A stretch of DNA of 64,000 nucleotides from Hemiscyllium ocellatum (lineage: Eukaryota): positions 12,772,001 to 12,836,000 of the forward strand of contig NC_083426.1 of assembly GCF_020745735.1 (NCBI RefSeq). The letters are read 5' to 3'. Position numbers and translations under genes: made by a program. The notes beneath the pieces are model-generated. The model was not told where the DNA came from and made no database searches. It worked only from the letters and a program-made list of their open reading frames with translations. Of the stretch, positions 6,300 to 29,614 are shown one piece after another. Each line of letters opens with the position of its first letter. Within the stretch, counting starts at the first letter, position 1.

Positions 6300-6336
6300 A
6301 TGTGGATATTGATTCTCCTCATTTGTTCCATTCCCG
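6300..6336 (+). CDS. Leader exon A (MWILILLICSIP)
   Basis: ATG, hydrophobic 12-mer, phase-1 donor G|gtgagt; conserved in copy B. Confidence 0.85.
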
Positions 6337-27300: not shown

Positions 27301-29614
27301 GGTCTGAGAAGACCTCATCTCAAGATTCAAAGATCTCTGACACCAATAAACTGGATCTACATTGTCAATCCTTCACACAGCAACATCATCAATATTACTG
27401 CACAGCCTCAAATACTCAGGGAACAAAACCCAGTGAAATGGTTCATGTCTCAGTTCCCAGTGTAGCAGGGAGGGGCTGCAGTTCCATGATATAAATCAGC
27501 AGCATCGGTAAGTTTCCTACAAACACTGAGGCTGACACATTCATTCAATGTCTATTCAAACTGCTCATTGGTTAAGTTTCTTTCATACTTACAAATAAGT
27601 GCACCTCATCACATTATGTCTCTATGATATTTGAACAATTTTGAACAAGGTGTTAACTTATTCATGAGAATGGACAAGATTGTAATAAAGCTTCAGAGAA
27701 TGCATGCGTGCTTCACTCCAGCTTTGTGTTACATCTCACAGCTTGTGTATGTTATACCTTGAAGAGATAAAGTCATCATTATATCACAGCATGTGACCTG
27801 AGGGGATAATGGTGTCAGACTCCATCTTAGTTAGGGTCACATGAGGCATGACATGCTGATGGACGGGTGTCACTGTTTGTAATTGAATACCTCAGTTTCA
27901 ACCCAGATCCTGAAGTGTCTCTGGCTGTGAGATATGTTTCGTCAGATGCTGGTGTAAATATCTGTTGATTTGTCAGTCCTACAAAATCCACGCCTTGTTC
28001 TCATGTAACAGGAGCTAACGTAAAGATGACATCATTGGGTCTAAATACAATAGTGGAGGCAAAGGTCCCAGTGGAAGCTCACCCAGCAATCACAGGATAT
28101 TACTGGGCAGAGCAGGGGCTGCTGGATCCCCCAGGAATACATTGTCCAGTGGGAGCAGTGACCAGCTCAGTGGCTGGAACTTTCTTTTATGTTTGACAAG
28201 GATGAGAAAGGGGAATATAGTCTCACCAACTTCAGGCTTTCAAATGCTTTAATAAAAATACAGGAGCATTAATGTCCGGGTGAGGAACAAAATACAAGTT
28301 TTAGGCAAACTCGGTCACTACCACATCTCTCCAGACAGGGGGGGTTAGAGACAAATGAATTCAACAAAAATCCATGATTCACAACAAGTCCTGAGGTTCC
28401 ATTGGTGAGGAGAGCTCTCTTGGTTGTCTGTCACTGAGACTCAGATGAAGCTGAATATTACCTTATGTCTCAATAGGAAGTGAATATACTTGTGACAAAT
28501 CCACAACAATATCATCATCAACATCAACGACAATATCATCAACAACATCAACTACATTATTATCCACAACTTCATCAACAACATCACCAACAATATCATC
28601 AACAACAACAGGAATATCTTCAGGACCCAAGTCTGTCAGTAAAAGGTAGAACAATTTCATTGTCAATGTTTCCATCAGCATTGATTCCAGTGAGAATAAG
28701 TGACTGAGCATAGGCTTGCAATAGGTTTCAATTTTCGGTGATAACTTATCAGAATGTCAATGGTCACTGATTTCATGCAATGTCATTATGTTTGTTTCCT
28801 TATTGGTGAGCTGAAGGCGACATTTTCTGACTGTTTGAACTTTAGTTTTAATTAGCAAAGGGTTTAACTTTCCAGGTCATAACATTTACAATGTTGTTAT
28901 TTACGTTATTGGACATTCATAACAGGAAATGCCAATTTTCTGTTTGCCCCATCCCAGTTTAAATGCTTCATTATTCATCTAAGATATTCTTGTTGCTGTT
29001 GGTATTGTATATGTCAAAGAAGTGACATATTTTGTTGAGTCAGGAGTATCACTGCCAGGGATATTACATTCTCTCACATCTTCTCCTCCATTCTCTCATG
29101 TTAAACATTATTCCCAAACTGAGAGGGTGGGAGGCTATCTGGTTCCAGCTGGTAAAGCCTTGCCTATTAGAAGGTGCAGGAGCAGTGTGGGATGATGCTA
29201 TTCTGAGTTCCTCACTGACTGAAGAGACTTCTCACCCACTGGAATATTACACCAGACTGCAGTGCTCCTGTAAATATCCATCCACATCTAATAATCCTCA
29301 TTGACAACAAGATGCTGAGCATGACAGGACGTGGAACTGAAACTTGTTACATTTGGCCTCTATATATTGTTGAAGTCAATCAAAAATTAAACTGTAAATT
29401 AATTTCAGCTGTGCTGCTTTATTTTGCTACAATATACTGCAGTGTGAACAGGGGATAAATGTTTCAAACATCAAGCAGTCTTATTTCCTTCACGTTATTT
29501 TGTATTTCTTCTGTTTTACACAGTTACGTTGTCTGGGATGTGATACGCTGGGTACTCTTCACTCTCCTGGTGATTTCTTCTGTTTCAGTCACAATGTTTA
29601 CACAAAAACATTAG
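6300..29614 (+). CDS. Spliced gene, copy A: MDIR/CD300/pIgR-like activating Ig receptor (L-V-C2-V-C2-stalk-TM), ~528 aa
   Basis: Exons 6300-6336, 14941-15261, 15391-15714, 24445-24765, 24898-25221, 28477-28645, 29524-29614 all have canonical AG/GT flanks and compatible phases (1,1,1,1,1,2) and sum to 1587 nt ending in TAG; exon joining is predicted, with no transcript evidence. Confidence 0.8.
10234..12361 (-). mobile_element. 5'-truncated Penelope-like element (RT plus GIY-YIG endonuclease) nested in CR1
   Basis: MDIQSLYTSIP, QTKGIAMG and YIDD RT motifs; IIYCIRC...LYIGET GIY-YIG in ORF 10475..11272; in-frame stops (e.g. 11435-11437); flanking duplication tcaccctga at 10225-10233 and 12362-12370. 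Confidence 0.92.
10288..10323 (-). ncRNA. Minimal type I hammerhead ribozyme of the Penelope terminus
   Basis: AUUC-CUGAUGA-A-GGGC(UUGU)GCCC-GAAA-CG-UC-GAAU: intact core, stem I, stem II and palindromic stem III. Confidence 0.8.
14572..14597. repeat. (CT)n microsatellite within the CR1 5' region
   Basis: Direct observation; shorter in copy B (~44410-44428). Confidence 0.8.
14941..15261 (+). CDS. V1 exon A, CD300/pIgR/TREM-type V domain
   Basis: VSGALWAEK...ITISC...KYWC-x6-C...DAGRYSCG; tandem acceptors at 14940 and 14946; donor G|gtaaat. Confidence 0.92.
15391..15714 (+). CDS. C2a exon A, C2/I-set Ig domain
   Basis: cccacag|, SVTVSC...HYTW...YYCTASN, G|gtaagt; 324 nt, phase 1-1. Confidence 0.9.
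16367..20950 (-). mobile_element. Near full-length decayed CR1 LINE
   Basis: 3' tail tagagtcatagag; RT 16667..17413 ([14 protein letters not shown]); EN 18942..19394; ORF1 esterase 19413..19847. Confidence 0.92.
21605..22790 (+). mobile_element. Older decayed CR1 ORF2 fragment
   Basis: ELQEMGEILNKYF, QMEFNLDKCEVLHFG; many indels. Confidence 0.85.
23742..23835 (-). mobile_element. Short Penelope-like terminal fragment
   Basis: gaggactggggatgctggagatcagagtcgagagtgtggtgctggaaaaacacagcagg; absent from paralogous intron 1 near 7700. Confidence 0.55.
24445..24765 (+). CDS. V2 exon A
   Basis: VSDVLMAAK...ITISC...KYWC-x6-C...DAGWYSCG; same tandem acceptor and donor as V1. Confidence 0.92.
24898..25221 (+). 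CDS. C2b exon A
   Basis: Canonical AG/GT, 324 nt, open frame, paralog of C2a. Confidence 0.9.
25445..27075 (+). mobile_element. Older decayed CR1 ORF2 and 3' end
   Basis: EILNKYF, DKSPGTDQV, VKKVFNML fragments; CR1-type 3' end. Confidence 0.85.
27185..27507 (+). pseudogene. Pseudo-exon C2c (copy A)
   Basis: Acceptor cccacag changed to cccaacg; TAA at 27214-27216; 1-bp deletion (323 vs 324 nt); second TAA at 27492-27494. Confidence 0.85.
28477..28645 (+). CDS. Ser/Thr-rich mucin-like stalk exon A
   Basis: caatag| GSEYTCDKSTTISSSTSTTISSTTSTTLLSTTSSTTSPTISSTTTGISSGPKSVSK AG|gtagaa; the Q/H- and V/D-rich ORFs in the track are the wrong frames. Confidence 0.85.
29524..29614 (+). CDS. Transmembrane exon A (YVVWDVIRWVLFTLLVISSVSVTMFTQKH*)
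   Basis: Long pyrimidine tract and acacag|; phase matches the stalk donor; TAG followed directly by gtgagc. Confidence 0.88.

Follow-up and report, generated by a model that had tools for sequence, protein, structure and literature searches.

What kind of receptor is encoded by a tandem array of immunoglobulin (Ig) domain exons in the epaulette shark Hemiscyllium ocellatum, and do the two V-C2 modules present in each unit of the array belong to a single gene? The array occupies a stretch of 64,000 nucleotides of contig NC_083426.1 (positions 12,772,001 to 12,836,000, forward strand), hereafter the window; unless a different locus is named, positions are counted from its first letter. A self-comparison reveals that the window consists of two tandem units of ~31–34 kb each. 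With a probability of about 0.7, each unit is a single gene whose product is an elasmobranch type I membrane receptor of the MDIR family, belonging to the activating, adaptor-coupled class. The product would consist of a signal peptide, two V-C2 modules, in each of which a CD300/pIgR-type V domain with two disulfides is followed by a C2 domain of the FCRL type, a Ser/Thr stalk that is O-glycosylated and starts with a conserved cysteine, and a transmembrane (TM) helix with an arginine near its outer end, followed by a tail of only four residues.

Exon Structure of Gene 1

The exons of the first gene (gene 1) were read straight from the sequence and joined by script. All are located on the plus strand, and together they span positions 6300–29614, from the exact ATG to the exact stop codon, with the layout leader-V-C2-V-C2-Ser/Thr stalk-TM. 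The leader exon (6300–6336) has its ATG at 6300 and ends in phase 1 at a GTGAGT donor. It is followed by the V1 exon (14947–15261), coding for a CD300/pIgR-type V domain with an extra K-Y-W-C..C cysteine pair, the C2a exon (15391–15714), coding for an FCRL5-type C2 domain, and a second pair of the same domain types, V2 (24451–24765) and C2b (24898–25221). The stalk exon (28477–28645) is ~70% Ser/Thr, shows a conserved E-Y-T-C motif at its start and ends in phase 2, while the TM exon (29524–29614) contains the motif W-D-V-I-R-W, the hydrophobic helix and the four-residue tail, its last codon being TAG. The introns are of the GT-AG type throughout, with pyrimidine-rich acceptors and entry phases 1, 1, 1, 1, 1 and 2, and after joining, the reading frame continues for 524 codons before the TAG. 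An AATAAA signal is found at 29864, 250 nt beyond the stop.

In both V exons a second acceptor is present 6 nt upstream (14941 for V1 and 24445 for V2), each adding Val-Ser. Use of the upstream acceptors creates a V-S-G/D junction, as observed in most annotated relatives, and yields a product of 528 residues if both are used. The seven-exon, phase-matched model of 528 residues proposed in an earlier reading of this DNA from its letters only (hereafter the sequence-only reading) therefore stands, with a length of 524 residues if the downstream acceptors are used.

Domain Types

Both V exons pass the Pfam V-set threshold (1e-10 and 3e-11). Among the sequences of the Protein Data Bank (PDB) they match pIgR (1e-32 summed, with D1 and D5 as best domains), CD300LF (1e-15), CD300A, CD300C and TREM2. 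The two cysteines of the K-Y-W-C..C pair both line up with those of pIgR D1, and the canonical Ig residues are invariant across every V exon. V1 was also modelled with AlphaFold from 48 family sequences, which gave a mean predicted local distance difference test score of 94. The best structural match of the model is CD300lf, with a template modelling score of 0.88–0.90, a root-mean-square deviation of 1.3–1.4 Å and 37–38% sequence identity, followed by CD300a, pIgR D1, TREM2 and NKp44. The CD300/pIgR/TREM-type V domain with an extra cysteine pair, as put forward in the sequence-only reading, is thus borne out by the PDB sequence matches and by the predicted fold; structure prediction had been named there as a check, and the V1 model lies closest to CD300lf.

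The best PDB match of the C2 exons is to domains 4–6 of human FCRL5 (7.7e-31 summed over domains), with which they have the motifs C-E-x-x-x-G-S-L-P-I-x-Y and Y-Y-C-T-A-S-N in common. The C2 domains are specifically FCRL-like, a feature on which the sequence-only reading was silent, as it was on the third C2 exon of the unit, described below.

Membership of the MDIR Family

An exhaustive HMMER search with V1 retrieves 2078 relatives. The closest public paralogue (P0003), used in a word-indexed search, retrieves skate MDIR3, MDIR5 and MDIR2 at 1.7e-163, 5.2e-142 and 1.0e-76, respectively. The gene 1 product aligns exon by exon with MDIR5 of the clearnose skate (P0201, 501 aa; 46.5% identity over residues 1–522). 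It also aligns over its full length with a protein of 529 aa from Heptranchias (P0180; 57.8% identity over residues 1–523) and with P0195, P0196 and P0198 from rays. MDIR5 and these four proteins have the architecture L-V-C2-V-C2-stalk-TM and the motif W-x-V-x-R-W-L/V-L-F. Other members of the family contain one to ten or more domains, with charged TM segments or tails carrying tyrosine-based inhibitory motifs of immunoreceptors (ITIMs), and internal V domains following a C2 domain, with the V-S-G/D junction, recur throughout the family. Annotations of elasmobranchs and chimaeras are rich in its members, which are entered there as 'polymeric immunoglobulin receptor-like', 'Fc receptor-like protein 5' or 'uncharacterized'. 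By sequence and architecture, the gene 1 product can be assigned to the MDIR family, and the MDIR-type label of the sequence-only reading, for which a similarity search had been suggested, is upheld by the full-length alignment with MDIR5 and by the P0003 matches.

The similarities with MDIR5 include the order leader-V-C2-V-C2-short stalk-TM, the W-x-V-x-R-W motif, the E-Y-S/T-C motif of the stalk and, probably, the occurrence in a multigene family with both charged-TM and ITIM forms. The shark stalk differs in that it is a Ser/Thr repeat of much greater length, and the tail comprises 4 residues, compared to ~25 in MDIR5. Three residues before the TM arginine the shark product has an aspartate, whereas the skates have a lysine at this position. 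Moreover, the doubling of the V-C2 module in the shark has its own recent, readable junction, and the four-Ig state may thus have arisen independently of MDIR5.

Because their architectures differ, the product is not a member of the CD300, pIgR or FCRL families proper. Mammalian CD300 proteins (CD300lf, CD300a) have the same V fold with a double disulfide and form a paired activating/inhibitory family with a mucin-like stalk, but they contain a single Ig domain, whereas the shark receptor would have four, with interleaved FCRL-type C2 domains. Domains D1 and D5 of pIgR resemble the shark V domains; however, pIgR, considered here together with the Fc alpha/mu receptor and FcmuR, is a receptor in which V-type domains only are arranged in tandem, with a long sorting tail, unlike the interleaved C2 domains, charged TM and four-residue tail of the shark product. 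The FCRL proteins share the C2 motifs noted above for domains 4–6 of FCRL5, but have ectodomains of C2 domains only and ITIM tails or tails with motifs like the tyrosine-based activation motif of immunoreceptors (ITAM), in contrast to the CD300-type V domains and motif-free tail of the shark receptor. The two genes of the window are well-formed additions to the already known MDIR family, with a lineage-specific doubling of modules, and not a new kind of system.

Signalling Type

The best hydrophobic window of the gene 1 product comprises residues 501–519, with an arginine at its third position and an aspartate three residues before this arginine. The tail reads T-Q-K-H, directly followed by the stop, and is devoid of signalling motifs. 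The TM arginine is conserved in all aligned relatives, from skates to sharks. The charged TM segment and the minimal tail fit the activating, adaptor-coupled class. In such a mechanism the TM arginine would pair with an acidic residue in the TM segment of an FcR-gamma/DAP12-type ITAM adaptor, and the V domains, of which the loops are most variable between the copies, would bind the ligand. A literature search on shark ITAM adaptors returned nothing useful.

The sequence-only reading had described the region as a paired-receptor locus. Within the window, only charged-TM forms are present, and a tblastn search of the window for ITIM-type tail exons, using the tails of P0206, P0153 and P0169, gave nothing below E=1 except an overlap with C2. 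Intact ITIM forms occur in Chiloscyllium (P0206). For comparison, three other loci of H. ocellatum, all on CM036684.1, were included. In one of these, L001, a unit designated C has the arrangement L-V1-C2a-junction-V2-C2b, as in the window, but there the ectodomain leads into a stalk exon, a TM exon and ITIM exons of the inhibitory type (52635–59730 of L001) instead of the activating TM exon. A cytoplasmic exon contains the motifs L-V-Y-A-N-I, I-T-Y-A-V-L, V-T-Y-S-E-L and D-V-Y-A-D-I. The presence of ITIM exons behind the same ectodomain makes the paired-receptor designation plausible for the array as a whole, while the window itself shows the charged-TM side only.

The TM exon of L001 unit C is split over two frames relative to Chiloscyllium P0206, owing to an apparent deletion of 2 nt, and would give a short-tailed TM protein lacking ITIMs.

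The Junction between the Two V-C2 Modules

Leader and TM exons each occur exactly twice in the window, once per unit. A second leader between C2a and V2 was looked for with blastn at word size 7, using the leader and its flanks, and by a relaxed alignment of positions 6000–8300 against 20900–24460; none was found. Instead, the region upstream of V2 is composed of two recognizable segments on the plus strand. The first (21622–22790) is a fragment of a long interspersed element (LINE), which is collinear with the LINE downstream of C2b (25435–26629; 71% identity) and ends at the junction. The second (22793–24450), directly upstream of V2, is copied from intron 1 and corresponds to 6809–8212 and 14805–14946 with ~76% identity. 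It does not include a leader exon, and the part of intron 1 to which it is homologous does not begin until 6809, at a distance of 470 nt from the leader exon on its downstream side. The junction between LINE and intron 1, at ~22793, is readable and shows ~7 nt of microhomology.

A junction of this kind would have brought together the LINE that follows one V-C2 pair and the intron 1 that precedes the next. The joining event may have been a deletion in which a stalk exon, a TM exon and a leader exon were lost or, equally, a tandem duplication of a V-C2 segment within a single gene. The same junction is present in L001 unit C and therefore predates the split of these copies.

In the two genes of the window and in L001 unit C, which are the three four-Ig copies, both V-C2 pairs are intact, and the V exons of the window and of the three CM036684.1 loci are open in 14 out of 14 cases. 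Between the window and unit C, V2 differs by 3 nonsynonymous and 5 synonymous substitutions, where the neutral expectation is that ~6.4 of the 8 would be nonsynonymous. The resulting ratio of nonsynonymous to synonymous rates (dN/dS) of 0.14, based on small counts, indicates that V2 is under purifying selection with respect to its epaulette-shark counterpart. For V1, dN/dS is ~0.4 in the framework and 1.2–1.8 in the loops, again from small counts. A search with the V2 exon for short transcript-derived protein fragments bearing V2 gave no candidates.

Gene 2 and the Tandem Array

The second unit contains a second complete gene (gene 2) at 40437–60272, also on the plus strand, with a predicted product of 522 aa. 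Its exons are the leader (40437–40473), V1 (44778–45092), C2a (45229–45546), V2 (55109–55423), C2b (55556–55879), the stalk exon (59135–59303) and the TM exon with the stop codon (60182–60272). V2, C2b, the stalk exon and the TM exon are identical to those of gene 1. V1 shows 94% nucleotide identity to its gene 1 equivalent, with the differences mostly in loop regions. C2a has an in-frame deletion of 6 nt, which removes two B-strand residues before the first cysteine; the deletion is common to gene 2 and unit C of L001 (40768–41085 of that locus) and absent from gene 1.

The identity between the units varies along their length, from 86–96% upstream of ~16.7 kb to ~95% over 16.7–23.2 kb. It then rises abruptly, such that 23200–33342 and 53860–64000 differ by 4 mismatches in ~10 kb. 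This near-identical block spans V2, C2b, the pseudo-exon described below, the stalk and TM exons and 3.7 kb of downstream sequence. Since the 3′ halves are near-identical, all differences between the two predicted proteins are confined to the leader, V1 and C2a.

Each unit contains a third C2 exon on the plus strand, at 27185–27507 in unit 1 and 57843–58165 in unit 2, with the same lesions in both copies: the acceptor CAG is changed to ACG, a TTA codon to TAA, one nucleotide is deleted, and a CAG codon before the donor is changed to TAA. The lesions are also present in the homologous epaulette-shark units, which identifies the sequence as an old, shared pseudo-exon. A coding function is ruled out by the lost acceptor, the two in-frame stops, the 1-nt deletion and the occurrence of the same lesions in the epaulette-shark copies. 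The upstream AG at 27155–27156, considered as a rescue acceptor, keeps the frame, but turns the A strand into frameshifted sequence and the reading still ends at a stop. Over its central ~100 nt, however, the pseudo-exon matches the functional C2 exons with 100% identity, suggestive of conversion in which both the C2 exons and the pseudo-exon took part.

The three CM036684.1 loci are 92–97% identical to the window at the nucleotide level. The possibility that the window corresponds to one of them was rejected, because the maximum identity is 97% and none reaches 99%. Their array has the same exon types, stalk, TM and C2 pseudo-exon (NCBI models P0153, P0154 and P0003, named 'polymeric immunoglobulin receptor-like' and 'uncharacterized LOC132828091'), and the usual unit is L-V-C2-LINE-pseudoC2-stalk-TM. 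Two of the epaulette-shark units contain frameshifted C2 exons. Together with the two gene copies, the shared pseudo-exon and the ~10-kb near-identical block, these frameshifts agree with the tandem array and birth-and-death evolution proposed in the sequence-only reading.

The introns are full of LINE fragments, with matches to reverse transcriptase, endonuclease and ORF1, and of a nested Penelope-like element of the GIY-YIG type. The latter is located in a 4.5-kb stretch of intron 1 of unit 1 (9688–14223) that is absent from unit 2; the element is GC-rich (53%), has an open reading frame at 10475–11272 on the minus strand, and is nested among LINE fragments. A scan of the window against Rfam gave no match.

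Alternative Explanations

A number of observations weigh against the interpretation of each unit as one gene for a four-Ig activating receptor. The C2a domain lacks the A-strand cysteine, as does the membrane-distal C2 of skate MDIR5, and in gene 2 it also lacks the two B-strand residues. A survey from 2014 reported no FcR-gamma homologue in the shark data then available (PMC4016189). Among public proteins, V2 has more than 75% identity only to the chimeric epaulette-shark model P0153. The dN/dS values of 0.94 for V1 of gene 1 against gene 2, and of 1.23 for C2a against C2b, are based on small counts and also fit relaxed constraint, and the division of V1 into framework and loops was chosen after the alignment had been viewed. 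Furthermore, all Ig exons are in phase 1, and hence products that skip V1-C2a or V2-C2b, or combine the Ig exons in any other way, stay in frame. Most CM036684.1 units have two Ig domains, which would make the two-Ig form the default, and the NCBI models of paralogues are of the form V-C2-stalk-TM. The main rival to the four-Ig reading builds on these last points and on the dN/dS values near 1 of V1 and C2a. It holds that two-Ig isoforms dominate, such that the locus chiefly gives L-V1-C2a-stalk-TM or L-V2-C2b-stalk-TM, with the other pair skipped or used alternatively and the four-Ig form minor or absent. Against it, three independent copies all retain both V-C2 pairs with open frames and consensus splice sites, although the duplicated intron that flanks them has diverged by ~24%; V2 appears to be under purifying selection; and skate MDIR5, as well as several models from sharks and rays, shows the four-Ig arrangement together with the same TM motif. 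Dominance of the two-Ig forms is accordingly judged unlikely, and the predicted gene product probably contains all seven exons and four Ig domains.

Two further explanations concern the integrity of the genes and of the assembly. The shared C2 pseudo-exon, the frameshifted C2 exons in two epaulette-shark units and the inhibitory TM exon of unit C, which appears to be frameshifted, together with introns crowded with LINE and Penelope-like insertions, could point to silent or decaying genes in an array with fast turnover, which are intact through recency and not through function. Such decay is quite improbable in view of the two copies, each with an undamaged coding sequence of 1.57 kb and an undamaged full set of 12 splice sites, the selection on V2 and the invariant canonical Ig residues in every V exon. 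The abrupt switch from ~95% identity to a ~10-kb block with only 4 differences (23.2–33.3 against 53.9–64.0 kb) would be expected if the second copy, or at least its 3′ half of 10 kb, were an assembly artefact. Yet the 5′ halves are 4–14% apart and contain large indels (the 4.5-kb nested element is confined to unit 1, and unit 2 has ~0.8 kb of additional sequence), which marks the units as distinct loci, and recent gene conversion is common in arrays of this kind. An artefact is therefore very improbable, and the near-identical block indicates recent gene conversion or duplication. The reading of each unit as one gene for a four-Ig activating MDIR receptor is preferred over these alternatives.

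Implications

The window provides two clean, hand-resolved gene models for a family that is poorly served by automatic annotation; the nearest NCBI models are chimeras labelled 'pIgR-like', 'FCRL5-like' or 'uncharacterized'. It also offers a view at base-pair level of a change in module number, through one LINE-intron microhomology junction, and makes the partial homogenisation of neighbouring genes visible, with ~10 kb of near-identical sequence beside sequence of ~95% identity. A published survey reported no PIGR or FcRL homologues in sharks (PMC4016189). In contrast, pIgR/CD300-type and FCRL-type domains coexist in the shark receptor described here, which makes such receptors reasonable candidates for Ig-binding or lipid-binding innate receptors. 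To comparative immunologists this combination will not be surprising, because the skate MDIRs have already been described as such a family. It is quite improbable that the charged-TM MDIRs are the missing Fc receptors for IgM, IgW or IgNAR of cartilaginous fish, in which case they would represent the ancestral pool of modules from which the pIgR/FcmuR/CD300 and FCRL/FcR lineages of bony vertebrates were drawn.

Intergenic Duplication and Alternative Frames at the Gene Ends

Between the two genes, a direct duplication of 2.1 kb is observed (35453–37508 and 37682–39786, 92% identity). Its counterpart upstream of gene 1 (3261–6001) is single.

The nearest NCBI models (P0003, P0153, P0154 and P0158) are read-through chimeras of neighbouring genes, and both ends of gene 1 contain sequence that such models employ. 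A good-quality acceptor within the TM exon (AG at 29587–29588) opens a second frame, S-H-N-V-Y-T-K-T-L-G-E-H-H..., which continues to 29745. The frame at 29589–29745 is used by NCBI models in Chiloscyllium (P0158) and the epaulette shark (P0153 and P0003), either for a tail that lacks a TM segment or to bridge into the 5′ exon of the next gene, and may correspond to a soluble isoform or to read-through transcription. At the other end, the 5′ untranslated region abutting the ATG (6240–6299) is translated in frame in the chimeric NCBI paralogue models (...L-T-S-R-T-E-L-x-F-x-N-K-T-M-W...), which implies an acceptor upstream of the leader that may serve read-through from the preceding gene.

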